From: Eukaryota sp. TZLM1-RC
Taxonomy: Eukaryota > Protista > Metamonada: BaSk clade
Assembly: GCA_040285825.1 (NCBI GenBank)
Contig: JAUPSS010000014.1
Location: forward strand, 190,337 to 254,336
Length of the DNA stretch: 64,000 nt
Direction: 5' to 3'
The stretch's first letter is position 1; every line of letters begins with the position of its first letter. This document shows positions 1 through 64,000 of this stretch, piece after piece. The translations under genes and the position numbers were made by a program. Below the pieces are notes generated by a model that worked only from the letters and a program-made list of their open reading frames with translations, made no database searches and was not told the DNA's origin.

Positions 1-247
1 TGCTCTTGGATGGTATTTTAAAATTTGCAATCAGTTTGTCAATTGTGTAATACAAAATATTACTTATGCCTTGTTTTAATAAAACTTTTGTTTTTAAAAT
101 GTTGGTGATAGAATTCCAACAATGGCGCAGAACGAAGATTTTGTAAAGATTTTGTTTTTGTTCTTGGGCTAAGGGAACTTTCCTCCTCACTTTGAGATGT
201 CACCACAAGAAAAGCGTCACGAAATAATTGCTTTTCAATTTTGGTAA

Positions 248-898
248 CCTTTGAGTCTGATGGTGTAATCAAAGTTGTTGAAGTTGTCACTGTTGATGTT
301 TGTAAGGATTCAGCAATTGATTTTGCCGATAAAGATGAAACTCCGCTCTGCTTTGCTGAAAAGAGCCAAATCAAAAAGTGCAATGAACCCTTATCTCAGC
401 TAGGATGTGTTGAGCATGTCAAGTATCAGCTGGTTCCATTTATTTGCTGTTTCTCTTTTTGGTGACATTGGAATTTCTGGCATTAAATTTCTCAAAGGTT
501 TCAGAAGTTTATTAAAAGAAAGAACGGTAAAAGAATGGAACTTTAATTTCTGGCACAACAGAATTGTTTTCAGTATACTTAAAGCAATTCCCGAAATGAT
601 AACCAAAGCACTGTTACAATTAGGTATAGAATACGAGAATCGCGCATTGAAAAGTTTTGATGATGATGATGCTTGTATTGAGGAAATTGAGTTCTAGTGA
701 TGCTGTTAGGCAAATGAACACACGAAAGAAAGTGAGTAATCAAAGTTTATTAATAAAACTGATTCATAGACGAGTATCACGTCATCAGTCGAAATACAAC
801 GAAACCTACTAAATCAATTTAAGTTCAACATCAACACTAGTATTTTTGTTTAATGTTTTGTTAGCGTTGAAAACAGAAAAGTGCGTAAGTAAAACAAC
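248..898 (+). mobile_element. 5'-truncated RLE-type non-LTR retrotransposon (3' end)
   Basis: Encodes VVTVDVC..FAEKSQIKK..LVPF..FWHNRIVFSI, homologous to 62032-63126. Flanked by 9-bp direct repeat TTTTGGTAA (239-247, 899-907). Confidence 0.8.
698..836. mobile_element. Solo LTR nested in the non-LTR fragment
   Basis: TG...CA termini with imperfect inverted ends (TGATGCTGTT / AACATCAACA) and a 4-bp TSD CTAG (694-697, 837-840), inserted at the host ORF stop codon. Confidence 0.65.
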
Positions 899-1539
899 TT
901 TTGGTAAAATATTATTAGAGTGTAAGTCAAGAAGATGCAAATAATAACCACAAATGAATTCTAAACCAACAATAGAAATTTCCTGACACCTAATTACTGC
1001 CTCATCGATCACTTCAATCATTTTCGGATCTCTGATGACATTTTTTAGACTGTCCCTTTAACCATCATAAAATTTATGTTTAACAGTTTCCATAAATTGG
1101 TCATTGTTGAAGAAAATAAATAATTTCATGGTTAAATCTGTATCCCCCAGACAATAAACTGCTACTGCAGTTCTTCTTTGGGATAAGAAAAATCTGAGAA
1201 GGAATCATCTCCTTGAACCTTCCAATACGTTGCAATATACTGAGGCTCAAGGTCAATTTTATTTTCCATTAATAGAATTTTAGAAACTGTGTTTAGTTTG
1301 CGTGGTTCATAATAATTTCTGTAAATACTAAAAGTATTAACAACAAATCGACCAGCAATAAATAGCTTCAAGTGTTTGTGATTCAATTCTATTAAATTTG
1401 TAGTATAGAATTGAATTCATTCACTAGCATCGATTTCATCTTTAAAAAAGTCCTCATTTTCAGAACGTTTCATAAAATGTGGGGTGCTAAATTGGACAAT
1501 ACTGAAACCACATATTATATGAGATTGTAAGTTTCTAGT

Positions 1540-3164
1540 AATTGTTTAAATGAACTTAGCAACTCATTTTCGGAGGAATGATGATAAATCTTGGTTCTCT
1601 AAGATAAGATCTGAACAACAAATAGCCAAAAATAATAATGACCCTTTATTCGAAAATGCAATTCTAGATGAAAACAGTCAAAATTAAAAAATAATCAGAA
1701 TAAAATTTTAATTTCAATTAGCCTCAGGAAACAGACACTGTTATTAGTACAGGGTTTAGTGTTAATCTGGCCACCCCAACAAGAACGTTTTTAGACAAAC
1801 TGTCCAAAAGTGATTTTTACTGGGTCAAAATGAGAAAGAACCATATAAATCATGTCCAGAGTTGTTCAATTTGTCAAAAAACGGCTCCAGTAAAAAGATC
1901 TAAAACACCTTCCACAGGATCTCTATGGGCAGATCGTCCGTTTGTAAGATTGAAAGTCGATACAATTGGACCCCTGAACACCGACAACGAAGGAAACAAA
2001 TATTCATTAGTATTTGTAGATTCTTTTACTGGATATACAATTTTAGTCCCTCTAAAAGAACTCAATGCTTCAGAAACCGCAGATGCCTTGATTTAGAACG
2101 TTTGGGCCATCTTTGGCATAGCTGTGGTAATTCATAGTGATAATGGACCCGAGTACGCCAATGAGACTTTCAAAATAGTGTGTAATAGATTAGCGATTGA
2201 GATGAGTAACCCAATTCCTTTCTATTCAAAAAGTAATGGACTTGTAGAACGTAAACATAGAGACGTTCTTCAATGCTTAAGAAAACTATTAATAGACTTT
2301 TAAACTTTTAATGATTACGGAAACTGACCTATTTATGTACCTCTATCGCAACTATTAATAAATTCGACTAAAAGCAGAAAAACTGGTTTTACCGCATACG
2401 AACTTATGTTTGGGTCTTCAATTAGTCCAAGAACAGTCCCTGCGAATACATAAGGAAATTTATCCAAATTCGAAACTAATATACATTAATAGATGACATT
2501 AAATTCAAAAATACTCGTGTACAAGAAAAAAGGGAAGAAGCAGAGCATCAACAAACATTTAATACTCCGACTTCAGTAGATAATACTAATTCGCGCTTTT
2601 TTGTATTTAATATTGAAAACTATGTCTTACGTAAAACCAAGCAAAATAATGAACTACATGGATCTTGGAATGAACCATTCTTAGTTATTGACATTCCATC
2701 CAAATCCACTGTATTATCAAAGAATCTTTCCACTGGCACTGAATCTACAATGGCAAAATCTATAACGCTAAAAAACCGAAAGATATTGAATTTCTCAAAA
2801 CAGTCGCAGCAGGCGATGTCAAAGACACGCTATAGAGAAGAGCCTCTCAGAATATAACTCTGACTCAGGTAGTTTCTGTACTGATCAATGATCTGGCAAT
2901 GAAACAACAGAAGAGCCTCTCCATTCGGTTAAAAACTCAGAAGCTTATAAGTTACTTAGTAAGAATAACTAAAAGATTGGTGAGCGTACCAATAGTCAAC
3001 GACAGGGTACTTCCATTGAGTCTGGGTCCTCTAAGCGGTTAGACGCAGCAATAGAATTAGGAAGCGAAGCTAATTCTTAGTATTTGTAGTTATTTATTTA
3101 TTTGATTATAGTTTGTGTTTCATATTTATATAAGCGGATTTATTTTGAAAAAGGGAAGAAGCAG
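1540..3164 (+). mobile_element. Degenerate Ty3/gypsy pol 3' part (integrase plus chromodomain-like tail), polypurine tract, LTR starting at about 3165
   Basis: GHP..YW..CSIC zinc finger; DTIGP, FVDSFT, HSDNGPEY and SNGLVER integrase motifs; chromodomain-like (W)SGNETTEEPLHSVKNSEAY; AAAAGGGAAGAAGCAG followed by TGT at 3165. Confidence 0.85.
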
Positions 3165-11608: not shown

Positions 11609-14481
11609 AACCCATAAATAATGCTCCACAAATTGTTGCAAAACCAGTTTGCAACCGATTAAAGCACAAAACTTGCAACACTTGTGGTATTTCTTTTAGA
11701 AAAAATGCAAAAGGAAAAACTTCTGACCGCTGCTTGAAATGCCGCATAGTTGATAACTACCATCCTCCTATAAGAATACCTCAAGAAATTCATCCGACCA
11801 AATGCAATGAATTTGCTTTCGTTTTTCAAAGATTTTTGGATCAATTATGTAAAGGAAAGTATGCTATCAATATTATTTGGGAATTTTTTGGTTCTTTTTG
11901 TCCTCCTTTTGAACAAAATTTCGTTAATATTTCCGAAGATTTAACTAATATAGCACCGAGAAATCAGTCATCCGAGAAATTAAGTAAAATTTTTGAAGAC
12001 AAATGCTTTGACAACAAATGGTCCAAGGCTTTGTCAGCTTTAAGTCCCGGAGTTAAAGCACCGAACAATGAAAATACAATAGATAAACTGAAAATTCTTC
12101 ATCCTTATGAAAACCCTATAATGGATCAAAATTTTTACGGCACATACTGGGAAAATTATCCATTGATGCCATCAGAAGTTTTTTCGGTTATCAAAAAGAG
12201 ACCTCGTGGTAAGTCTGCCGGACTTTCTGGTATTACTATTGATCATGTAAAAGCCGCGATTATTTCTTCAGAAGATTGCCTTGGTTTATTGACTAAATTT
12301 TTCAACCAAATATTATCTGGTCAACGCAAATACCCAGAAGAATTAAGAAGTTCTCGTTTGACTGCACTTGTCAAAAATTCAAAAATGGATGTTCGTCCTA
12401 TTGCAGTCTCTGAGAGCTTACACAATATTTTTTCTGCGTGTTGCTTAAGCAGGTTCAATGAAAAAGCTAAAAAGATTTTATTACCCTTTCAATATGGTAT
12501 AAATACTACAGATGGAGTCTCTTCAGCGATTTTTGCTACTGATGTCTTATTTCGTCAAAATGAATTCAATGTTTGCATGTCATTGGATTTTAGTAATGCT
12601 TTTAATTCACTAAGTCGTCGCAGTATCCATGGTGCTCTATTGCAATATATGCCGGAATTAATACCATATTTTCAATCAACTTATTGCACATATTCTAATT
12701 TACATTTTGGTAACAACATTTTGAGTTCATCAAGTGGCGTAAAGCAAGGAGATCCGTTAGGACCTCTTTTGTTTTGTTTGGCCATCCATCCTATTCTACT
12801 GCAAATTCAAGAGATGTTTCCTTCACTAAAAATGATTGCATATATGGATGATGTTGTGCTTATTGGTGATTTAAATATTGTGAAAAAAGCAACTGTATGT
12901 TTTAAAGAATTATTTACCAAAATTGGTCTCCGACTTAATTTACATAAATGTGTTTTGTTATCGAATTCTCCAGTTTCCACAATAATTGATGATATTGAAA
13001 TTCAAGCCAAATTATATTCAATTGATGCTATTCGTCATTTGGGTTCGTTTTTAGGAAATAATGATGAAATTACCAAAAAATTGTTTGAAAAGTTGAACTC
13101 AATTTCTGACAAAATTGACCGAATGATGAATTTAGATATAAAAAAACACATCAAATTTACCATTATAAGACTGTGTTTTAGTTCCAATTTTAATCATATA
13201 TTTCGATCTACAAATCCTCTCGTCACTAGGCTTTTGGCTCAAAAGTTTAATGAGTTACGTGCAAAAGTTCTGTCTCAATTACTGGGATGTAAAATGTTTC
13301 AAATTCCAGATCATGCTTACCTTAGTCCACATTATGGTGGTTTAGGGTGGACGAAGGCTTCTATTCTTACCTCGTGTGCTTTTGTTGGTGGATGCAGAAA
13401 TGCAATCTTTGAGTTTTCCGAAAGATTTGCAGATTGGGAAGATTTATTGATGACAACGCAAAGTTCCACTGTTTTTGCATTAAATGAAGAAATTTCAAGA
13501 ATTGATGTAGAAAAATGGGGTCGATGTTTTCCCCAATCATTCAATGGCAATATTCCAGAAAAAAATGTTTTAAATTTGAAGTACACTCTTCGAACATTAC
13601 AGAAAAGATTACCTGGAATGTATGAAAACGATCTTTATAATAATATTTGCAGCTCGGCTGTTTTAAATCAAGATCTTCACTCATTGTTATTGGAAAAGGG
13701 TGTTTGTGAAAACAAGGTGTCAGATTCTTCACTTTTTGTAACCATTGTACCACGAAGATTTGGATTGTGTGCCACTAATGAAGCATTTGTAACAAAAATG
13801 AGATTATATTTGAACATCCCCATTAACCAATTATTATCAAAAGAAAAATGTATTTGTTCGAATTCACCTCAACTCACTTTGCGCCATGCTCTAAATTGCT
13901 CTAAATTGATAACTTATCGTTCTTCATTACATGATGCTGTTAGAGACACTGTTTTCAATATGGCACAAACTGCAAGGATATCGTGTATCAAAGAGCCCCT
14001 GCTGAAAGAAACACTTTCTCTGAATAATTTTGGTTCTGATGATAGAGGTGATGTATACTGTGATTGGATTGATAATTCTGAAGCTATTGTTGACTTTGTC
14101 TCATGTAATGTTGCAAACGATACTTTGGTTCACAGAAGAAAACTTAATCCTGTGGCTGCTCTGGATTTTAAAGCAAAAGAAAAACATAGAAAATATGATA
14201 AAAAAATTGAAGATGCAAATGTCGATAGAAATACACAGCTGGTTTTTATTGCTTTCCCATTTTCGATAAATGGAAGATTATCAGTGGAAGCAGAAACTTT
14301 TTTGGATGACTTCCAAAAAATGGTGAAAGAAAAAACAATGAAAAGATTTGATATTTTTTTATGGCGTTCACGGATTCAATTTGCCGTTATTAATAGATTA
14401 CCGCGGTTTTTCAATCGAATTAGAGAAGCTTTAGCTAGACAGCAAGCAAATCAAGATTTTGTAGAGGAAATCTTGGTTTAA
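11572..14481 (+). CDS. Retrotransposon ORF2: CxxC-CxxC finger, reverse transcriptase, Cys/His zinc finger, restriction-like endonuclease
   Basis: Frame open from 11572; first ATG at 12121. Motifs KSAGLSG, VRPIAV, QYG, LDFSNAFNS, GVKQGDPLGP, YMDD, GGLG, CIC..HALNC, LHDAVRD, RGD..VD and KEKHRKY. Confidence 0.93.
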   Translation, partial: KEKFIRRKESKVEPINNAPQIVAKPVCNRLKHKTCNTCGISFRKNAKGKTSDRCLKCRIVDNYHPPIRIPQEIHPTKCNEFAFVFQRFLDQLCKGKYAINIIWEFFGSFCPPFEQNFVNISEDLTNIAPRNQSSEKLSKIFEDKCFDNKWSKALSALSPGVKAPNNENTIDKLKILHPYENPIMDQNFYGTYWENYPLMPSEVFSVIKKRPRGKSAGLSGITIDHVKAAIISSEDCLGLLTKFFNQILSGQRKYPEELRSSRLTALVKNSKMDVRPIAVSESLHNIFSACCLSRFNEKAKKILLPFQYGINTTDGVSSAIFATDVLFRQNEFNVCMSLDFSNAFNSLSRRSIHGALLQYMPELIPYFQSTYCTYSNLHFGNNILSSSSGVKQGDPLGPLLFCLAIHPILLQIQEMFPSLKMIAYMDDVVLIGDLNIVKKATVCFKELFTKIGLRLNLHKCVLLSNSPVSTIIDDIEIQAKLYSIDAIRHLGSFLGNNDEITKKLFEKLNSISDKIDRMMNLDIKKHIKFTIIRLCFSSNFNHIFRSTNPLVTRLLAQKFNELRAKVLSQLLGCKMFQIPDHAYLSPHYGGLGWTKASILTSCAFVGGCRNAIFEFSERFADWEDLLMTTQSSTVFALNEEISRIDVEKWGRCFPQSFNGNIPEKNVLNLKYTLRTLQKRLPGMYENDLYNNICSSAVLNQDLHSLLLEKGVCENKVSDSSLFVTIVPRRFGLCATNEAFVTKMRLYLNIPINQLLSKEKCICSNSPQLTLRHALNCSKLITYRSSLHDAVRDTVFNMAQTARISCIKEPLLKETLSLNNFGSDDRGDVYCDWIDNSEAIVDFVSCNVANDTLVHRRKLNPVAALDFKAKEKHRKYDKKIEDANVDRNTQLVFIAFPFSINGRLSVEAETFLDDFQKMVKEKTMKRFDIFLWRSRIQFAVINRLPRFFNRIREALARQQANQDFVEEILV

Positions 14482-14777
14482 TGATAGTCGTCCCATTAGT
14501 TATGATTTAATTTAATCAAGTGTGCAAATTCAATAAATAAAACTTTTATCTGATAAATAAATATAAATAACTCAAAAAAGATGAAGACTTTTCATAAAGG
14601 TTTGTACACATAGATATCAAAAATCTACAGACGCAGTTCCCATACCTAATAATCAGCAACAAATAGTTGCAACATCCAAAATACTAAACGTCCTTCCTGA
14701 TCCTGCTGTCATAACTAAGTATCAAGGAACAAGCGGTTTGTAAGAGATTAATGTGGTGTCGTATAATAAGAGATGCG

Positions 14778-23729: not shown

Positions 23730-24600
23730 GAAGGGTTAACAATATACTAGATTGAGGTCTTTCATTGCAAATGCCATTGAAACAAACTTAGAAGTTAATA
23801 TTCAAATGTTATATCATCAGTACATTGAAAAAAATGTAAATTTGAAATTTGAATAAATCGAAGTTGAAGAAGAAATGACCCAAAAAGAAGTTTGTTTTTC
23901 GTTGGAGTTTACGACAAACAAATTGAAATTTTTACCAATGTCTGCTGATGAAATACTGAATGATTTGGATGCAAAAAGTTTGAACCTATCAAACAAATTT
24001 GTTGTTTCCAATAACACTCATAACTTATTACAATTTGAAGATTGGTTGAACTAATTTTGTCCTAATTAGAACTTTTTAATTATAATCTACTGTTATTAAT
24101 TTTTCAAAATAAGAGGAGCAACCTATTTGAGTCAATTTATTACTGTTTACTTTAAAAAAACATCATTTATGAAAGCTTCGATCAAAATTATTAATTTTAT
24201 AAAAGAAGCTGAATGAATAATGTTGTGTACAATTCCAATTGTCAAACATGAGACGTCTGGATTTTTTTGAAGTTGATAGCCAAAAACACTGGGTTTTTTT
24301 GCCCTTTCCTTAGAGATGATGAAATTAATAAGAATAAAGATTATTTAAGAGTGGAATACAATGACTGACACCCAAGTCTGATGGTTCTGCAGCCTGCATT
24401 GAGCTTGTAAGAGAGAATTGTATTAGCATGTCATTCAAGCCTGATAGTGCAAAGTTTGCATCCACTGAGAACTATTTGGATGATTTGGACGTTGAATTTC
24501 TATCATCAAAACACAAAGTACATATTGACCCTGGTAAAAGTGATTTACTTTATTTTTGTAGTAAAAAAGATTCAAACTTAATGCAAAAGACCAACTAAAA
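23730..24600 (+). pseudogene. Highly decayed Fanzor1-like relic (copy B)
   Basis: Reads NAIETNLEVNIQMLYHQYIEKNVN, then ENYLDDL..KVHIDPGKSDLLYFC (D at 24527), matching the RuvC-I segment DPGKSDLLYF of copy C. Confidence 0.65.
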
Positions 24601-26089: not shown

Positions 26090-27350
26090 TTCGATATCCT
26101 TCAACCCATCATTACTATTACTGAACCTACTCATAGCATTTCTTTTAAATTCCACTCTAATAGCTACAGTAGCTTTAGAAATCATTGTTGGAATTGCCTT
26201 AAAAATGCAAAAACAATTTTATTAAACCAAAACGAAAAGTTCTTTTTTTCGAGATCTATTTTGCAAAACTGTTGCAAAACATGTTCGACTCTACCTAAGT
26301 TTGCCAATGGTTCTTCATGTTATTTATCTTTTTTTCAGCATAGGATGATCGCGACTCAGCAAAATACACCAAACGACCGGCAGAATATTTCACAGACATC
26401 GACTGAAACTACATCAACGACATTGAGAACACCATCGAGTCCTGGAGCTAGTGAATCTGCTCTTCATTTACTGCATAAGTCATCAGTTTCATCTGCAGAG
26501 AGCTTACGAACTAATGGTTCAAAAAAAGATTCAATGTGGAAGCTTTTACACGTCGCATATAATTGATCACGAACTGAATCATGCACAATTGAGCGACACG
26601 TGATAAAATATTTGCACTTGAAAATATGGGAAAGCATAACCACATTCTTACAGCGACAAATTAAATCATTTGGTAACGAACAAAACCATCAGAAACATTT
26701 CATTCTTCAAGCAATAATCCACTGATGATCAGAGAGTAGCAGACCATAAACACTAGGCGTTTGAAAAATAAGATAACTTGAGCTGCTACTTTTCAGATCA
26801 ATCAAGAATTTTGCAAAACCGATTTTTACCTTAGTCAAGCTAAGACGTACATGATAACCAAAGTTTTCTGAAACATTCAAGATTTCTTCAGGCAATTTGC
26901 AAAATCTCAATGGCAAAGAGATCAAGCATCTTGGAGGTAGTTACATTGTCGGAGGGAAAACATTGGGACCAATTATTTCATGAATGAGATCCGATGCCTG
27001 CTTTAAATCAATAAGATAAGAGCTGCAACAATTCTCAATGAGATCAATTTGGATTTGAAAACGATTCAAAAATTCAAAAATTATTTTTTATCACCTCCAA
27101 TAAAAGCAGCTTTACAAAGGTAGCTTGACTTGTGAAAATCAACACCACTAATAGTGGTACCACAAAAAAATGTAATTTCGTATTTGAGATGGCTCAATTT
27201 CCAATTATTGGGCTAAAAACGGATACGTGTTTGCTATAAATTCAAAATAAATTTAGAAATAATTTATCCAACTTTCAATTCTAAACTTTGTATTAAAAGT
27301 ATTTGAATGGTAATTCAATCAATTGAGCAATCAGTTCCTTGTCATCAAAA
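26090..27350 (-). mobile_element. Degenerate non-LTR retrotransposon, 3' part
   Basis: YGLLLSDHQW, CRC..HIFKC, HDSVRDQ and DGVLNVVDV; same family as 62032-63126. Confidence 0.85.
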
Positions 27351-52600: not shown

Positions 52601-55600
52601 CCAACATTGGTTCCAGTAACTTTAGTATTATCTTTAATATTGAAAACTTTGCCTTCCAGACCTTGGAAATTGGCACTATTCATAGTCAAATTAGTATTTG
52701 TTAATTCAAAGTGACCATCATTAGCAGTTGAATCACGAACAAGAACAGTTTCTAAATCAATAGTAGAATCAGTAGCAACAATTGATTGAGATTGACAACC
52801 AACAACAACTACATCATCAAAATCAACATTAGATTTAACAAGGGTAATAAGAGGTTCATCATTAGCACATCCACTAATAACTTTACCATCAGAATCAACT
52901 GGACCTAAAGTTTTGACATTGGTGAAATCCAAGGTTGAGTCATCAGCATTGATAAATGAACCAGTATTAGATTCATGGTGAACAATATCAAAGTCAGTAA
53001 TGGTAATTGTGGAAGTTTTGGAATCAATAATGTTGCTGAATTTGGTATCAGAAAGGTCAACAGTGGCCAAAGTAAGCTCAGAATTATCAATCAAAATGAT
53101 TGAATCAGTGGTTGAATCTGAGTCAGAAATACCAACATTGGTTCCAGTAACTTTAGTATTATCTTTAATATTGAAAACTTTGCCTTCCAGACCTTGGAAA
53201 TTGGCACTATTCATAGTCAAATTAGTATTTGTTAATTCAAAGTGACCATCATTAGCAGTTGAATCACGAACAAGAACAGTTTCTAAATCAATAGTAGAAT
53301 CAGTAGCAACAATTGATTGAGATTGACAACCAACAACAACTACATCATCAAAATCAACATTAGATTTAACAAGGGTAATAAGAGGTTCATCATTAGCACA
53401 TCCACTAATAACTTTACCATCAGAATCAACTGGACCTAAAGTTTTGACATTGGTGAAATCCAAGGTTGAGTCATCAGCATTGATAAATGAACCAGTATTA
53501 GATTCATGGTGAACAATATCAAAGTCAGTAATGGTAATTGTGGAAGTTTTGGAATCAATAATGTTGCTGAATTTGGTATCAGAAAGGTCAACAGTGGCCA
53601 AAGTAAGCTCAGAATTATCAATCAAAATGATTGAATCAGTGGTTGAATCTGAGTCAGAAATACCAACATTGGTTCCAGTAACTTTAGTATTATCTTTAAT
53701 ATTGAAAACTTTGCCTTCCAGACCTTGGAAATTGGCACTATTCATAGTCAAATTAGTATTTGTTAATTCAAAGTGACCATCATTAGCAGTTGAATCACGA
53801 ACAAGAACAGTTTCTAAATCAATCGTAGAATCAGTAGCAACAATTGATTGAGATTGACAACCAACAACAACTACATCATCAAAATCAACATTAGATTTAA
53901 CAAGGGTAATAAGAGGTTCATCATTAGCACATCCACTAATAACTTTACCATCAGAATCAACTGGACCTAAAGTTTTGACATTGGTGAAATCCAAGGTTGA
54001 GTCATCAGCATTGATAAATGAACCAGTATTAGATTCATGGTGAACAATATCAAAGTCAGTAATGGTAATTGTGGAAGTTTTGGAATCAATAATGTTGCTG
54101 AATTTGGTATCGGAAAGGTCAACAGTGGCCAAGGTAAGCTCAGAATTATCAATCAATATGATTGAATCAGTGGTTGAATCTGAGTCAGAAATACCAACAT
54201 TGGTTCCAGTAACTTTAGTATTATCTTTAATATTGAAAACTTTGCCTTCCAGACCTTGGAAATTGGCACTATTCATAGTAAAATTAGTATTTGTTAATTC
54301 AAAGTGACCATCATTAGCAGTTGAATCACGAACAAGAACAGTTTCTAAATCAATAGTAGAATCAGTAGCAACAATTGATTGAGATTGACAACCAACAACA
54401 ACTACATCATCAAAATCAACATTAGATTTAACAAGGGTAATAAGAGGTTCATCATTAGCACATCCACTAATAACTTTACCATCAGAATCAACTGGACCTA
54501 AAGTTTTGACATTGGTGAAATCCAAGGTTGAGTCATCAGCATTGATAAATGAACCAGTATTAGATTCATGGTGAACAATATCAAAGTCAGTAATGGTAAT
54601 TGTGGAAGTTTTGGAATCAATAATGTTGCTGAATTTGGTATCAGAAAGGTCAACAGTGGCCAAGGTAAGCTCAGAATTATCAATCAAAATGATTGAATCA
54701 GTGGTTGAATCTGAGTCAGAAATACCAACATTGGTTCCAGTAACTTTAGTATTATCTTTAATATTGAAAACTTTGCCTTCCAGACCTTGGAAATTGGCAC
54801 TATTCATAGTAAAATTAGTATTTGTTAATTCAAAGTGACCATCATTAGCAGTTGAATCACGAACAAGAACAGTTTCTAAATCAATAGTAGAATCAGTAGC
54901 AACAATTGATTGAGATTGACAACCAACAACAACTACATCATCAAAATCAACATTAGATTTAACAAGGGTAATAAGAGGTTCATCATTAGCACATCCACTA
55001 ATAACTTTACCATCAGAATCAACTGGACCTAAAGTTTTGACATTGGTGAAATCCAAGGTTGAGTCATCAGCATTGATAAATGAACCAGTATTAGATTCAT
55101 GGTGAACAATATCAAAGTCAGTAATGGTAATTGTGGAAGTTTTGGAATCAATAATGTTGCTGAATTTGGTATCAGAAAGGTCAACAGTGGCCAAGGTAAG
55201 CTCAGAATTATCAATCAAAATGATTGAATCAGTGGTTGAATCTGAGTCAGAAATACCAACATTGGTTCCAGTAACTTTAGTATTATCTTTAATATTGAAA
55301 ACTTTGCCTTCCAGACCTTGGAAATTGGCACTATTCATAGTCAAATTAGTATTTGTTAATTCAAAGTGACCATCATTAGCAGTTGAATCACGAACAAGAA
55401 CAGTTTCTAAATCAATAGTAGAATCAGTAGCAACAATTGATTGAGATTGACAACCAACAACAACTACATCATCAAAATCAACATTAGATTTAACAAGGGT
55501 AATAAGAGGTTCATCATTAGCACATCCACTAATAACTTTACCATCAGAATCAACTGGACCTAAAGTTTTGACATTGGTGAAATCCAAGGTTGAGTCATCA

Positions 55601-58600
55601 GCATTGATAAATTGAACCAGTATTAGATTCATGGTGAACAATATCAAAGTCAGTAATGGTAATTGTGGAAGTTTTGGAATCAATAATGTTGCTGAATTTG
55701 GTATCAGAAAGGTCAACAGTGGCCAAGGTAAGCTCAGAATTATCAATCAAAATGATTGAATCAGTGGTTGAATCTGAGTCAGAAATACCAACATTGGTTC
55801 CAGTAACTTTAGTATTATCTTTAATATTGAAAACTTTGCCTTCCAGACCTTGGAAATTGGCACTATTCATAGTCAAATTAGTATTTGTTAATTCAAAGTG
55901 ACCATCATTAGCAGTTGAATCACGAACAAGAACAGTTTCTAAATCAATAGTAGAATCAGTAGCAACAATTGATTGAGATTGACAACCAACAACAACTACA
56001 TCATCAAAATCAACATTAGATTTAACAAGGGTAATAAGAGGTTCATCATTAGCACATCCACTAATAACTTTACCATCAGAATCAACTGGACCTAAAGTTT
56101 TGACATTGGTGAAATCCAAGGTTGAGTCATCAGCATTGATAATTGAACCAGTATTAGATTCATGGTGAACAATATCAAAGTCAGTAATGGTAATTGTGGA
56201 AGTTTTGGAATCAATAATGTTGCTGAATTTGGTATCAGAAAGGTCAACAGTGGCCAAGGTAAGCTCAGAATTATCAATCAAAATGATTGAATCAGTGGTT
56301 GAATCTGAGTCAGAAATACCAACATTGGTTCCAGTAACTTTAGTATTATCTTTAATATTGAAAACTTTGCCTTCCAGACCTTGGAAATTGGCACTATTCA
56401 TAGTCAAATTAGTATTTGTTAATTCAAAGTGACCATCATTAGCAGTTGAATCACGAACAAGAACAGTTTCTAAATCAATAGTAGAATCAGTAGCAACAAT
56501 TGATTGAGATTGACAACCAACAACAACTACATCATCAAAATCAACATTAGATTTAACAAGGGTAATAAGAGGTTCATCATTAGCACATCCACTAATAACT
56601 TTACCATCAGAATCAACTGGACCTAAAGTTTTGACATTGGTGAAATCCAAGGTTGAGTCATCAGCATTGATAAATGAACCAGTATTAGATTCATGGTGAA
56701 CAATATCAAAGTCAGTAATGGTAATTGTGGAAGTTTTGGAATCAATAATGTTGCTGAATTTGGTATCAGAAAGGTCAACAGTGGCCAAGGTAAGCTCAGA
56801 ATTATCAATCAAAATGATTGAATCAGTGGTTGAATCTGAGTCAGAAATACCAACATTGGTTCCAGTAACTTTAGTATTATCTTTAATATTGAAAACTTTG
56901 CCTTCCAGACCTTGGAAATTGGCACTATTCATAGTCAAATTAGTATTTGTTAATTCAAAGTGACCATCATTAGCAGTTGAATCACGAACAAGAACAGTTT
57001 CTAAATCAATAGTAGAATCAGTAGCAACAATTGATTGAGATTGACAACCAACAACAACTACATCATCAAAATCAACATTAGATTTAACAAGGGTAATAAG
57101 AGGTTCATCATTAGCACATCCACTAATAACTTTACCATCAGAATCAACTGGACCTAAAGTTTTGACATTGGTGAAATCCAAGGTTGAGTCATCAGCATTG
57201 ATAATTGAACCAGTATTAGATTCATGGTGAACAATATCAAAGTCAGTAATGGTAATTGTGGAAGTTTTGGAATCAATAATGTTGCTGAATTTGGTATCAG
57301 AAAGGTCAACAGTGGCCAAGGTAAGCTCAGAATTATCAATCAAAATGATTGAATCAGTGGTTGAATCTGAGTCAGAAATACCAACATTGGTTCCAGTAAC
57401 TTTAGTATTATCTTTAATATTGAAAACTTTGCCTTCCAGACCTTGGAAATTGGCACTATTCATAGTCAAATTAGTATTTGTTAATTCAAAGTGACCATCA
57501 TTAGCAGTTGAATCACGAACAAGAACAGTTTCTAAATCAATAGTAGAATCAGTAGCAACAATTGATTGAGATTGACAACCAACAACAACTACATCATCAA
57601 AATCAACATTAGATTTAACAAGGGTAATAAGAGGTTCATCATTAGCACATCCACTAATAACTTTACCATCAGAATCAACTGGACCTAAAGTTTTGACATT
57701 GGTGAAATCCAAGGTTGAGTCATCAGCATTGATAAATGAACCAGTATTAGATTCATGGTGAACAATATCAAAGTCAGTAATGGTAATTGTGGAAGTTTTG
57801 GAATCAATAATGTTGCTGAATTTGGTATCAGAAAGGTCAACAGTGGCCAAGGTAAGCTCAGAATTATCAATCAAAATGATTGAATCAGTGGTTGAATCTG
57901 AGTCAGAAATACCAACATTGGTTCCAGTAACTTTAGTATTATCTTTAATATTGAAAACTTTGCCTTCCAGACCTTGGAAATTGGCACTATTCATAGTCAA
58001 ATTAGTATTTGTTAATTCAAAGTGACCATCATTAGCAGTTGAATCACGAACAAGAACAGTTTCTAAATCAATAGTAGAATCAGTAGCAACAATTGATTGA
58101 GATTGACAACCAACAACAACTACATCATCAAAATCAACATTAGATTTAACAAGGGTAATAAGAGGTTCATCATTAGCACATCCACTAATAACTTTACCAT
58201 CAGAATCAACTGGACCTAAAGTTTTGACATTGGTGAAATCCAAGGTTGAGTCATCAGCATTGATAAATGAACCAGTATTAGATTCATGGTGAACAATATC
58301 AAAGTCAGTAATGGTAATTGTGGAAGTTTTGGAATCAATAATGTTGCTGAATTTGGTATCAGAAAGGTCAACAGTGGCCAAGGTAAGCTCAGAATTATCA
58401 ATCAAAATGATTGAATCAGTGGTTGAATCTGAGTCAGAAATACCAACATTGGTTCCAGTAACTTTAGTATTATCTTTAATATTGAAAACTTTGCCTTCCA
58501 GACCTTGGAAATTGGCACTATTCATAGTCAAATTAGTATTTCTTAATTCAAAGTGACCATCATTAGCAGTTGAATCACGAACAAGAACAGTTTCTAAATC

Positions 58601-60571
58601 AATAGTAGAATCAGTAGCAACAATTGATTGAGATTGACAACCAACAACAACTACATCATCAAAATCAACATTAGATTTAACAAGGGTAATAAGAGGTTCA
58701 TCATTAGCACATCCACTAATAACTTTACCATCAGAATCAACTGGACCTAAAGTTTTGACATTGGTGAAATCCAAGGTTGAGTCATCAGCATTGATAATTG
58801 AACCAGTATTAGATTCATGGTGAACAATATCAAAATCAGTAATGGTAATTGTGGAAGTTTTGGAATCAATAATGTTGCTGAATTTGGTATCAGAAAGGTC
58901 AACAGTGGCCAAGGTAAGCTCAGAATTATCAATCAAAATGATTGAATCAGTGGTTGAATCTGAGTCAGAAATACCAACATTGGTTCCAGTAACTTTAGTA
59001 TTATCTTTAATATTGAAAACTTTGCCTTCCAGACCTTGGAAATTGGCACTATTCATAGTCAAATTAGTATTTGTTAATTCAAAGTGACCATCATTAGCAG
59101 TTGAATCACGAGCAAGAACAGTTTCTAAATCAATAGTAGAATCAGTAGCAACAATTGATTGAGATTGACAACCAACAACAACTACATCATCAAAATCAAC
59201 ATTAGATTTAACAAGGGTAATAAGAGGTTCATCATTAGCACATCCACTAATAACTTTACCATCAGAATCAACTGGACCTAAAGTTTTGACATTGGTGAAA
59301 TCCAAGGTTGAGTCATCAGCATTGATAAATGAACCAGTATTAGATTCATGGTGAACAATATCAAAGTCAGTAATGGTAATTGTGGAAGTTTTGGAATCAA
59401 TAATGTTGCTGAATTTAGTATTTGAAATACATGTTTCTTGAATTAAAGCAAAAGAATTAACAAAATCAAAAGCTCCATAATTAGAATAGGAATCCTGTAT
59501 GGAATTATTGGTCAACTTTACAATGGAATTATCCCTTACTTCCAAAATTTTGCCACTTATGTTAGAGAACAGACAGTTGGTTATGAATACCTGGGAAGAA
59601 GTTACTGTTATAGTTGAGTTACTTTCACTAGCTGAAGACAACATTGAATTGGTCACGACAATATTGGAATTATCTGCATAAACAAAGGAATTTGACAATA
59701 GAGACATTGATATTGATGAAATGCTAATAGATGAATTAAAGCTATAAAAAAACTCAAACAAAAAGAAAGTATCAGCAGCAGCCATAATTTTTGCCATGTT
59801 AAAGTTGAAATTAAAAGAAGAAATAAAGTAATTTAAAAATGTTGAATTATGAATTGATAAAAACTCAATTGAGCTATCCAATTGATTAATGATACCACTT
59901 AGAAGATCATTGTTGAAAACAGTACGATTAGAATTTAAAAAAGAAAAGAAAACAGAGTCTTTGATAGAAACATTCGTGATTTCAAAATTGGAATTGATTG
60001 AATTAAAGAAAACAGAATTAGCAAAAATGTTGTGAATATGGAGGGAATTGACAAAACAAGTGGAATTAGAGAAACTAATAAAATTGGAATTAGAATTAAA
60101 AAGTGTAGAATTGGAAAGACTTAATGAAGAGTTGGCTAAATTAATCAGATAAAAAGTATTTACATTGCGAAAGTCTACCAATGAAAGTTCTACACTTGAA
60201 TCACTAGCTTGAACCACAGCATGAGTGCAATTTTCCACAACCATATTACGTAGAATCAAATTACTATGAGTAAGATTAAATAAAGGGCCGTTTAAACAAG
60301 TCAAAATAGTTGGTTCTGCTTCTGTATTCAAGGCAGAAAGTTCAACATCGGTATCAATAAGAGAATCTTCAAATGATGATTCAGTGAATGTTCCAGGAAG
60401 GAGAACTACATGTCCAGAATACAGTGGGGAGGTGATAGCATGAAAAAGAGTGAAACAAGGGTGGGAGAGTGTGCAGTTGTTGATATCATTCCCAATGTTA
60501 GAGAGATAGACATGGGATAATACTGTATTTAATAGAGCAGCAAAGAGCAGTAACTTCAGTAACTGTAGCAT
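46672..60571 (-). CDS. Giant (~4,630 aa) type I membrane protein: signal peptide, beta-helix repeats, PSI-like Cys domain, TM helix; one extra base at about 55611
   Basis: The 1657-aa and 3024-aa ORFs carry the same 177-aa repeat and join if one base in 55609-55613 is removed. N-terminal GND..C..PC.TL..A cap; CAEVPSCSLCVSYPNCGW; TM YISLILMSLILTFLLFL followed by ERKR. Confidence 0.88.
50517..59416 (-). repeat. Coding tandem array, about 16.8 x 531 bp (177 aa)
   Basis: ORF-track features recur every 531 bp (532 across the frameshift); units are nearly identical. Confidence 0.98.
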
Positions 60572-62031
60572 TCATGCCAATATCATTGAAACAGATGATG
60601 TCTATAACAATGAAATAAGTGTCCTTTTTACACCAATTTATAGGGTTTGAGTTTTTGAGAAGAAGACGATATTCTCCTTGATAGCTTTTTTCTTTGAACC
60701 TTTGTTAACCTTGGTTCTCTGCAGGTATTCCGGTCTATCTCCACCATTTACATGTGCTTCCATCACTGCCAACATATTAAGCGAAGCATTTCAATCTCTA
60801 TTCCACAAACTTTCGCATGATTTACACATGGTAAGCCCGTGGCGAATAGACATCTCATGCCTCTTCCATGGCCTAGGATTTCTGCACCATCGGAATGTTT
60901 CAACTGTTTTCCTTTGGTAGGTTCTTTGAATTTCATGTGTTTTCGTTGTTCCCAGTCTCCGATTCCAATAACTACTTGGCTGGGATCACCAATTACTGAT
61001 TTGAATCTCTGGATCATCTTCGCCTCAGGTCTTGTGCGATTAATCTCAGCCCACCATCTTTGTTTCCTAAATATTTTTTGATGATAGACTTCACCAACAA
61101 TACTATTCACATAATTCTTTTGTTTAATATACTCCATAAATCTATCAAACCTGCGGCTTTTGGAATTGAATTGGGATAAAGTTGCTTCCCATTCTGCTAC
61201 AGATTTAGTTTTTGTTCATTATTTCTCAAATTAAATGAGTATTCAACTTCGTGGGGAATATTGATTTCTTGAGGTACTTCACCTCTTAATAAACTAATTG
61301 TTCTTTCGGTCATTTGATTAATTATACTGCTGCTTAAATCCATCCTTTGTTGTTGCTCTTCAGATGGTTCATAATTGGATAGATCAATCACTCTACCAGA
61401 AGAGTTACTTATTGTGATAAGAGTGTCATTACGTATGATGTCTCTTATTCTTTTGAATTTGGAACTTTTCGATTCAAATCTTCATTGATTTTGAGTGAAC
61501 GTAAAATGAACATATTTATCTCTCTCAGGTTTTTTTTGAATAAGTCATTCCAGTAGCTAAATTGGCAGAAAAATAGAGTAGATCAGATTTTCCTGGATCA
61601 GCAGCGGCAGGGTCATATCTTGGTATTCAGAAGGATTGATGCTGGGGTCATCAATATATTTTTCCTTATCTTTTAACTCTTTTGCACTTACTTTGTACTT
61701 TTTCAAGTCCATTCTAGATTGAATGAAACTTACTGCTATTCCATCAATCTCGATACTAGACATGAAGAACTTGGAATTTTCTGAATAAAGTTTAGTGTTT
61801 TTAATCTCGTCCATTTTTAAAATGGTGTCCCATAAAACCAAATCAGGAGCTTGATTATTGCATTGGTAAGACGACCTTGGACCAAGAATATCCTTAAATT
61901 GGACAAAGAACAAGTCCAATAAACTTGTCTTGTCAATTCTGATATACGAGGGAATACAAGAATTCTTCAAAGGCAGAGCATGAAAGAGTTTACTCTCCTC
62001 ATCCTCTAAATAATTATTAATATAAAACATT

Positions 62032-63126
62032 TTGTTTAAAGTTTTTTAATTTATTGAGATAAGAATCACACCCATCTAGAATTCAATATCCTCCAAACAA
62101 GTGTCACTATTACTAAACCTACTCACAGCATTACGTTCATATTCTACACCAATAGCTAAAGGTGCCTTTGAAATCATTGTTGAAATAGACTTGAAAATGT
62201 AAAAAACAATTCTATTTAACTAGAAAGTGGAATTCATTGTTTTACCAGACCTATTCAGTAACACTTTTTTGAAATCTTCAAAAAAGTGCAAGCCTGAAGG
62301 TCCAATATTGCCATAAAGAGAAATCGCAAACGGCACAAACTGATATTTCACATGTTCTACTCTACCTAACTGTGCCAAAGGTTCTTCATATTTTTTTATC
62401 TTCTTTTTTCGGCGTTAGATAACGGCGAATCAGCGGAATACACTAAACGAGCAGCAGAATTTTTGCAAACATCAACTGAGACAACATCTACAACATTGAG
62501 AACACCATCGATCCCTGGAGCTACTAAATCTGCCCTTCTTTTACCAAAGGAATCATCAGTTTGATCTGAAGACAGCTTACGTACTAATGGCTCAATAAAC
62601 GCCTCTATATTGAAACTTTTGCACATAGCATATAATTGATCACGAACTGAGTCATGAACACTTGAGCGATAAGTTATGAAATACTTACAGTTTAAAATAT
62701 GGGAAAGCGTAACAACACTCTTGCAGCGACAAATTACATCATTTGGTAAAGAACAAGGCCATAGAAAACATCTCATTCTCATTGCAGTGGTCCATTGGTG
62801 ATCATTAAATAGAAGGCCATAAATGTTGGGAATTTGGGAGATTAGGCAACTTGAGCAACTGTCTTCAAGATCAATCAAAAAGTTTGCAAAAACGGGATAT
62901 TTTTCTTCAGCCAAGCTAAGACGTACAATATAATCCAAGTTTTCTAAAATTTTCATGATTTTTTTTCTTCAATTTTGCAAAAGTCAGTGGTAAGGAGAGC
63001 AAGCTTCTTGCAGGAAGTTCCACAATATCAGAGGGGAAAAATTTAGACCAAATATTGGGGGAAAGAATTTCAATTTCCTGTTGCAAAAAAATGAGATAAG
63101 AGCTGCCACAATTTTCAATGAGATTA
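62032..63126 (-). mobile_element. 5'-truncated non-LTR retrotransposon inside Fanzor copy C
   Basis: CRC..HILNC, HDSVRD, RADL..VDV and AEKR motifs; 16-bp TSD ATTAATATAAAACATT (62016-62031, 63127-63142). Confidence 0.92.
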
Positions 63127-63176
63127 ATTAATATAAAACATTGCCCTAAAATAGTAATTTGATTTTGATGAAAAAT

Positions 63177-63568
63177 GGATGCTCTGGATTTTAAAGCAAA
63201 AGAGAAACATAGAAAATATGATAAAGATATTGAAGAGGCAAATGTCGATAGAAATACACAGCTGGTTTTTATTGCTTTCCCATTTTCGATAAATGGAAGA
63301 TTATCAATTGAAGCAGAAACTTTTTTGGATAACTTCCAAAAAATAATGCAAGAAAAAACAATGAAAAGATTTGATATTTTTTTATGGCGTTCACGAATTC
63401 AATTTGCCATTATTAGTAGATTACCGCGGTTTTTCAATCGAATTAGAGAAGCTTTAGCTAGACAGCAAGCAAATCAAGATTTTGTAGAGGAAATCTTGGT
63501 TTAATGATAGTCGTCCCATTAGTTATGAGTTAATTTAATTAAGTGTGCAAATTCAATAAATACATTTA
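63177..63568 (+). mobile_element. 5'-truncated copy of the 11206-14546 family inside Fanzor copy C
   Basis: Near-identical to about 14155-14540; 9-bp TSD ATGAAAAAT (63168-63176, 63569-63577). Confidence 0.92.
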
Positions 63569-64000
63569 ATGAAAAATCAAATTTTAAATACTTTTCCCTT
63601 TTAGAATTACTGGGAAGTAAAAGAGGGATCTGGTCATTAATGAAAAGCGAAGTAATTGATGAGACTTTGTTTCTCATTGCAGAAGTTTCGCCATCAATAT
63701 CTCTACATCCTTCTAGAAGGATGGATTTAACTTTGTTGATGAATGATGAGAAGTTTTTCTTATCTTGCTTTTTCAGGACGTTGCTGTTTCTCTTAACATC
63801 ATAATAAAACATCGACAAACCGATCCAAGAAATCACAGTAATGCTTCTGGATGCTATTTTTGAAATTCACAATCAGTTTGTCAATTGTGCAATACAAAAT
63901 ATTACTGATTCCCTTTTTTGATAAAACTTTTGAAACAAGTTTTTCTTTAAAGTGTTGGTGATAGAATTCCAACAACGGGGCACAACGAGAATTTTGCAAA

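Follow-up and report, generated by a model that had tools for sequence, protein, structure and literature searches.

In eukaryotes the counterparts of TnpB and Cas12 are the Fanzors, which are under development as compact genome editors, and their movement there, like their service to the elements that carry them, is still poorly understood. Fanzor1 proteins are omega-RNA-guided nucleases of the TnpB type and contain a single RuvC site and a zinc ribbon. The published Fanzor signature combines a RuvC-I DPG with an alternative Glu six residues upstream of the first CxxC (PMC10711439), and the canonical RuvC-II Glu is replaced by an inert Gly or Pro (PMC10530073). Here we describe a decayed gene of this type in a 64,000-nucleotide stretch (the window) of contig JAUPSS010000014.1, assembly GCA_040285825.1, from strain TZLM1-RC, the type strain of Skoliomonas litria, a free-living metamonad of soda lakes (PMC11603281). 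The gene occupies positions 60583-64000 on the minus strand and continues ~780 bp beyond the window end. We put at roughly 93% the probability that it is a pseudogene, a 5'-truncated and decayed copy of a repeated S. litria Fanzor1 element. The copy is dead and non-functional, unable to make a nuclease, and its family is an unusual Fanzor1 variant.

The family resembles the solved Fanzor1 proteins (SpuFz1 of Spizellomyces punctatus, PDB 8GKH; PpFz1, 9CF0; GtFz1, 9CER) collinearly and over its full length, sharing the DPG, a Gly for the canonical Glu, the alternative Glu, a CxxC..CxxC ribbon and NRD, and the predicted fold of one paralog, P0152, lies closest to these structures. Judged by sequence, the family is Fanzor1. 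It differs from other Fanzor1 in that Skoliomonas members carry a 66-68-amino-acid (aa) insertion after RuvC-I, a ~13-aa insertion right after the DPG and an in-frame PolB-type exonuclease segment in front, and the copy described here, itself dead, has lost the alternative Glu together with the first CxxC. The nearest non-Skoliomonas relatives are ~650-aa DUF8286 plus Cas12f1-like_TNB proteins from metagenomes and Coccomyxa green algae (P0004 and P0289 among them), which have the same motifs and 45-55% identity over the RuvC half; unlike the Skoliomonas copies they are single-exon and intact, without the exonuclease extension or the 66-68-aa insertion, and several lie on gene-dense, virus-like contigs. 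On the metagenomic contig that encodes P0004 (L006), genes are short, lack introns and crowd both strands, UDG and carbonic anhydrase among them; the contig resembles the genome of a giant virus or something similar, not a chromosome of a protist.

A literature search, with the SpuFz1 Nature paper and its supplements outside its scope, returned no link between Fanzors and Metamonada, Skoliomonas, barthelonids or Giardia, and the sole paper joining Fanzor with Trichomonas was unrelated. This is consistent with the suggestion, made in an earlier note drawn from the DNA letters alone, that the family may be undescribed in this protist lineage, and the locus adds a metamonad lineage to the Fanzor range. 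The dead copy has its value as a dated, well-anchored example with empty-site controls and not as a working enzyme.

Collinear pieces and decay of the Fanzor1 copy

Pieces of the window were searched separately and were joined only for frame checks and for DNA alignment with paralogs. Lesions were mapped against five Skoliomonas paralogs (L001 to L005) that are 91-94% identical to the copy, and seven Skoliomonas copies of the family were read in all. The fetched locus of the copy under study (L009; window position equals 72031 minus L009 position) is identical to the window across the compared overlap.

Six pieces (A, B, D, E, G and H), all on the minus strand, are collinear with the family profile and follow one another in order. 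Piece A (63802-64000) is a segment of the Fanzor1 N-terminal helical region that aligned by hhalign with profile positions 133-192 (E 3.5e-9), and piece B (63569-63866), which runs up to the first of two inserts, aligned with positions 213-268 (E 0.033) and is 90% identical to L001 and L004. The middle of the protein is represented by piece D (61560-62030), annotated on the contig as a 157-aa open reading frame (ORF) and reading ..FHALPL..IPSYIRIDKT.. and ..IEIDGIAVS..; it aligned with positions 280-411 (E 2.7e-13), a part of the profile built mostly from non-Skoliomonas sequences. Piece E (61528-61626; positions 418-435, E 1.2e-5) contains the RuvC-I DPG at 61599-61591, within AADPGKSDLLYF (DPGKSDLLYF), and upstream of 61484 stands FTQNQ, followed by a TGA at 61484-61482. 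The RuvC core lies in piece G (60904-61215; the region around positions 480-590) with FRKQRW at 61071-61054, VVIGIGDWEQ (IGIGDWEQ at 60969-60946), in which a Gly that is invariant in the family alignment stands at the position of the canonical RuvC-II Glu, and EPTKGK at 60924-60907. Piece H (60794-60910) holds the second half of the zinc ribbon and RuvC-III and aligned with positions 605-641 at an E value of 4e-18, which is inflated because the profile includes close paralogs there; it contains the second CxxC, CKSC (60826-60815), and the RuvC-III WNRD (60805-60794), in the context CKSCESLWNRD. The C-terminal tail (60628-60790; ..NASLNMLAVMEAHVNGGDRPEYL..) closes at the ancestral stop, a TAA at 60630-60628. 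Three-frame translation recovered in their expected minus-strand places all the motifs on which the earlier note had based its reading (DPGKSDLLYF, FTQNQ, FRKQRW, IGDWEQ..EPTKGK, a CxxC and WNRD), and the Asp residues of DPG and NRD, whose alignment it had proposed as a check, align with Asp residues that are invariant in the family.

A phmmer search with piece G (104 aa) against 1.84 billion representative proteins returned 941 relatives, 292 of them at <=1e-10. Many are 600-800 aa long and match near their C-terminal third, and S. litria itself contributes, as "hypothetical proteins", the top two matches (94% and 90% identity) and ~16 more fragments. The best direct PDB match of piece G was PpFz1, at a weak 0.0015, and pieces D and H had no relevant match among solved structures. 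Full-length members of the family gave far clearer results: P0004 (655 aa) matched SpuFz1 at 1.5e-41, PpFz1 at 4e-41 and GtFz1 at 3e-28, the Skoliomonas paralog P0152 matched PpFz1 at 3e-21, and a profile of 80 family members matched PpFz1 (2e-92), SpuFz1 (3.5e-88) and GtFz1 (2.4e-51) and nothing else at <=1e-3. In a Foldseek search, an AlphaFold model of P0152 (pLDDT 79.5) was closest to SpuFz1 and PpFz1 (E ~3e-14), so both the family profile and the paralog fold agree with the earlier assignment to Fanzor1. The alternative Glu is found six residues before the first CxxC in the paralogs and is invariant in the family.

The insertion that follows RuvC-I is ~66-68 aa long relative to P0004-like proteins and lies at ~61213-61409 (minus strand), between RuvC-I and a helical region. 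It occurs in all Skoliomonas copies examined, and is therefore a family trait, and is absent from the non-Skoliomonas relatives. The earlier note had described an extra insert of ~65 aa: the insert is real and of nearly that length, and it is not peculiar to this copy. In the paralog model it is predicted, at low confidence (pLDDT 38-62), to form a hairpin, a helix and a disordered loop.

The reading frame is interrupted by two tails of non-long-terminal-repeat (non-LTR) retrotransposons. Insert 1 (63177-63568) is the 392-bp 5'-truncated 3' tail of an R2-like element in plus orientation, antisense to the Fanzor gene, and is flanked by a perfect 9-bp target duplication, ATTTTTCAT on the minus strand (63168-63176 and 63569-63577). 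Insert 2 (62032-63126), the 1095-bp 5'-truncated tail of a related element, lies in the minus (sense) orientation between the copies of a perfect 16-bp duplication, AATGTTTTATATTAAT (63127-63142 and 62016-62031). The earlier note had called them nested, but they sit side by side in opposite orientations, separated by 50 bp of Fanzor sequence (63127-63176, minus strand; ..SKSNYYFRAMFYIN) that is 92-96% identical to L001 5700-5749 and L004 5546-5595. Removal of both inserts, each with one duplication copy, gives a 265-codon open frame (63866-61560) that reads ..KYLKFDFSSKSNYYFRAMFYINNYLEDEESKLFHALPL.. across the joints and connects the ORF fragments exactly as had been written; the restoration holds for this segment and does not extend to the whole gene. 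Both sites are uninterrupted in L001, L003 and L004, which have one copy of each duplicated sequence and therefore serve as empty sites.

Insert 1 shares 96% identity with the final 387 bp (window 14153-14539) of an element at 11734-14539 that encodes a reverse transcriptase (RT): its 915-aa ORF contains RVT_1 (8e-19) and has R2 proteins as its best matches (4e-10). For insert 2 the identity is 77% with window 26279-27049 and 95% with another copy, L009 5604-6476, just upstream in the same contig. The RT domain and best matches of the source ORF, the 5' truncations with intact 3' ends and the target duplications of varied length are all as in R2-type non-LTR retrotransposons; unlike these, the inserts lie outside ribosomal DNA and lack a poly(A) or simple-repeat tail, and the endonuclease type is judged from a CCHC-like motif seen by eye.

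In addition to the two insertions, alignment of the copies placed in the gene five single-nucleotide indels, one 100-nt deletion and two CGA-to-TGA changes, so that the earlier description of a dead copy with frameshifts is borne out. One extra base relative to L001 and L004 lies at 63804-63806 (near 63805), the DPG has a 1-nt deletion on one side (near 61612) and a 1-nt insertion on the other (near 61537), a 1-nt deletion at ~61213 closes the 66-68-aa insertion, and a 1-nt insertion falls in the C-terminal tail near 60684. The TGA at 61482-61484 is CGA (Arg) in 5/5 paralogs, and that at 60791-60793, right after NRD and likewise reported before, is also CGA in the paralogs. Both premature stops are C-to-T changes at CpG, a pattern that would fit deamination of methylated cytosine, and two events are too few to conclude this. 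The 100-nt deletion (junction 60911-60912, a short GAAAA repeat at its bounds) shifts the frame and removes a stretch, ..LIDEFRTSCCCFNC.. or ..GKGLRILFKKAGYKVFLIDEFRTSCCCFNCKKAE.. in the paralogs, that includes both the alternative catalytic Glu and the first CxxC; this accounts for what had been reported as a deleted RuvC-II. That Glu (..LIDEFRTS.., ..DEFRTSCCCFNC..) is present in L001 to L005 and lost here, and of the zinc ribbon the second pair, CKSC, is left. Short contigs from public DNA runs have CGA at both TGA sites and an undeleted 100 nt; they derive mostly from paralogs and therefore neither verify the 1-nt indels of this locus nor show its expression.

Several observations weigh against reading the locus as the remnant of an omega-RNA-guided Fanzor1 element. 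None of the separate pieces reaches a family threshold in Pfam or NCBIfam, the profile match of piece B is weak, and none of the seven Skoliomonas copies is intact. Among the 1-nt indels, one or two fall within A-runs and might be long-read assembly errors; the other lesions are of a different kind. Rfam gave no omega-RNA match on 60300-61300, and folding of the 3' 218 nt showed no unusual stability (z 0.23); these two results therefore support neither the presence nor the absence of an omega-RNA. The four public sequencing runs include none recorded as RNA.

On the most probable reading, decay followed the arrival of the element just upstream of a giant surface-protein gene. Target-primed reverse transcription inserted two R2-like non-LTR retrotransposons, leaving 5'-truncated tails and the 9-bp and 16-bp duplications, a 100-nt deletion took the catalytic alternative Glu with half of the zinc ribbon, and the two CGA-to-TGA changes and five 1-nt indels accumulated.

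An exonuclease segment in frame with Fanzor1

Family-B DNA polymerases carry a 3'-5' exonuclease of the DEDDy fold, with Exo I, Exo II and Exo III motifs. Beyond the window end, L009 7201-8229 (window-equivalent 64830-63802) is a single open frame of 343 codons in which a segment of such an exonuclease is followed by the Fanzor1 N-terminus. Pfam DNA_pol_B_exo1 is matched by residues 17-116 (3.7e-11; 43.3 bits, the cutoff being 23) and yeast Pol delta by residues 16-174 (1.4e-9); ~16 residues after the exonuclease segment, residues 191-343 match positions 46-192 of the Fanzor1 profile (E 6e-15). The Exo II (..NILKFDIP..) and Exo III (..YCLRD..) regions lie in frame just past the window. The 5' truncation of the copy has cost it Exo I: homology to the paralogs starts at about window-equivalent 64781, and paralog L001 reaches further upstream into the exonuclease. 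The junction is also open in frame in L004, over 265 codons. The PolB-like part of the L004 frame alone found no match in PDB or Pfam, whereas the longer L001 and L009 frames did. Relatives of ~650 aa were the only kind among the best 120 matches listed for the P0004 protein search.

The ancestor was probably a single long gene in which Fanzor1 stood in frame behind the 3'-5' exonuclease domain of a family-B DNA polymerase, and any activity of the fusion protein is inferred from the open frames. In engineered fusions, TREX1, TREX2 or T5 exonuclease is likewise joined to a Cas or Fanzor protein in one polypeptide; these are man-made and draw on other exonuclease families, whereas the Skoliomonas fusion would be natural, with a polymerase proofreading domain as the partner. 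The natural frame parallels what engineers have tried artificially, on Fanzor2 in one report (PMC12923547). The listed papers on Fanzors and exonucleases, covered mainly through titles and abstract openings, suggested no natural fusion.

The junction could also be accidental: a single insertion may have struck a polymerase pseudogene, or landed next to one, and segmental duplication may then have spread the product. The copy under study shares its 5' truncation point with a second copy at window 1-1586, and it shares with L004 a left flank of 188 bp that is not part of the element (L009 7062-7249, window-equivalent 64969-64782, against L004 4253-4440; 98% identity). L004 is flanked by an RRM-protein gene, and the shared flank partially duplicates the 5' part of this gene, leaving a ~285-bp internal gap; its occurrence beside both copies points to DNA-level copying (segmental duplication) or to template switching. 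The exonuclease segment, moreover, consists of the Exo II and Exo III regions without Exo I. Against this, the frame has stayed open across the junction over 343 codons here and 265 in L004, though both copies are decayed elsewhere; L001 extends the exonuclease further upstream; and the many loci that hold copies are unrelated, a different host gene standing at the right end in each. We consider an accidental junction unlikely.

Right ends at host start codons

Homology between copies of the element ends sharply at ..ACTTATTTCATTGTTATAGACA..ATCTGTTTCAATGA, which is position 60583 in the window. The last ~52 nt of the right end are highly conserved among copies, and within the conserved right end of this copy (60583-60627, minus strand) the last 38 nt are identical in three copies. 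The end is formed by a predicted hairpin, CATTG..CAATG (60612-60584, minus strand), followed by an A. Between it and the host gene lie 11 nt and then the ATG (60571-60569; spacer and ATG together 60569-60582, minus strand) of a giant surface-protein ORF (55598-60571).

This arrangement, which like the exonuclease segment goes unmentioned in the earlier note, recurs. With the window included, 7/8 right ends at six loci stand beside host ATGs, and 6/7 of those in the other loci are followed by an annotated host gene on the same strand whose start codon overlaps or abuts the end. At L001, L002, L003, L004 (at 7134) and L005 (at 8907), an open frame begins from an ATG within the terminal CAATG(A/G); at L004 1760 the annotated ATG is 4 nt upstream and in another frame. 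The host genes include an ApbA reductase, whose Rossmann motif begins at residue 10, an acyltransferase, a signal-peptide protein and a UCH protease. Some right ends are solo and 5'-truncated: one of 229 bp (L004 1545-1773) stands directly at the start codon of the UCH protease, one of 110 bp (L005 8800-8909) stands at that of the acyltransferase, and a third measures 49 bp (L005 5659-5707). Ordinary genes of the same loci have unrelated upstream sequences, except for two with a different repeated leader.

Such a leader is shared by two unrelated host genes, Vps35 and eIF3g. The ~70 nt upstream of their ATGs (L001 10722-10791 and L003 2864-2933, respectively) are homologous, reading ..ATCTCAAC..TATTTGACATT..TGTGCTATTAGCT and ending at the ATG, and this shared leader has the look of a docked end from a different repeat family.

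No transposase, terminal inverted repeats or Helitron-type end was found in the element, and its right end lacks CTRR. That copies have the right end in common but vary in their 5' truncation suggests copying from one end. We tentatively entertain, as a possible rather than a favored account, a once-active element that encoded an exonuclease-Fanzor1 product, spread from its right end only and docked its right ends on host ATGs, where they now act as leaders or promoters. Spread of this kind would leave an exact common right end and varied 5' truncations, and truncated copies would themselves be copied again; docking to the base on start codons might be guided by the terminal CATTG..CAATG hairpin or by a guide RNA. 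By analogy with the Fanzor1 proteins studied so far, the ancestor's guide RNA would have come from the gene 3' end and right end, with flanking host sequence as the guide. At the present locus, the position of the right end suggests that it now probably supplies the leader or core promoter of the surface-protein gene, and a passive role of this sort, directly upstream of a host start codon, is plausibly all that the copy has today. The placement of right ends against host start codons suggests a targeting rule, and a route by which the end of a mobile element could become the leader of a host gene.

Other origins and neighboring relics

A relic of TnpB, Fanzor2 or a Cas12-like protein, for instance from a bacterium or a giant virus, is a very improbable alternative to Fanzor1. 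Pfam, it is true, sees in the relatives only the shared Cas12f1-like TNB zinc-ribbon domain, whose threshold full-length relatives pass, and the closest relatives outside Skoliomonas come from Coccomyxa algae and from metagenomic contigs with densely packed genes and a virus-like look. But profile and fold searches, scored on paralogs and the family profile, rank the three solved Fanzor1 proteins far above the others: in the Foldseek search with the predicted P0152 structure, Fanzor2 reached 8e-3 and TnpB 6e-3, with Cas12j and Cas12f also far behind. The protein is of Fanzor1 size, with a long N-terminal region that aligns end to end with SpuFz1, and the locus lies in a eukaryotic chromosome contig whose neighboring genes bear introns.

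That the gene is alive, its inserts and frame changes being spliceosomal introns of a functional Fanzor1 mRNA, is barely credible and was rejected: Skoliomonas genes do have introns, and intron-like gaps serve in the public annotation to span some paralog frameshifts (the P0169 model is not a straight translation of the DNA), but the inserts are retroelement tails with target duplications and are absent from paralogs, the 100-nt deletion takes three family-invariant residues, one catalytic and two zinc-binding, and two in-frame TGA codons replace conserved CGA.

The window and its surroundings contain further relics of the family. The second partial copy (window 1-1586, minus strand) is cut off by the start of the window. 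Its PolB-exonuclease-like segment at ~1586-1061 is followed by the Fanzor1 N-terminus at 1057-812 and 247-1, and a retroelement tail (259-697, plus orientation) breaks the copy at ~248-894. A short and more divergent third Fanzor1 relic lies at 24377-24562 (plus strand), with a RuvC-I motif in ..IDPGKSDLLYF.. and 43% identity to residues 346-405 of P0004, and has no recognizable downstream continuation. Past the window end, a small inverted Fanzor RuvC fragment (L009 4338-4517, window-equivalent ~67514-67693) is 75-89% identical to window 60922-61212, and two further retroelement tails (L009 5052-5422 and 5604-6476) lie between this fragment and the copy under study. The region is a graveyard of mobile elements.

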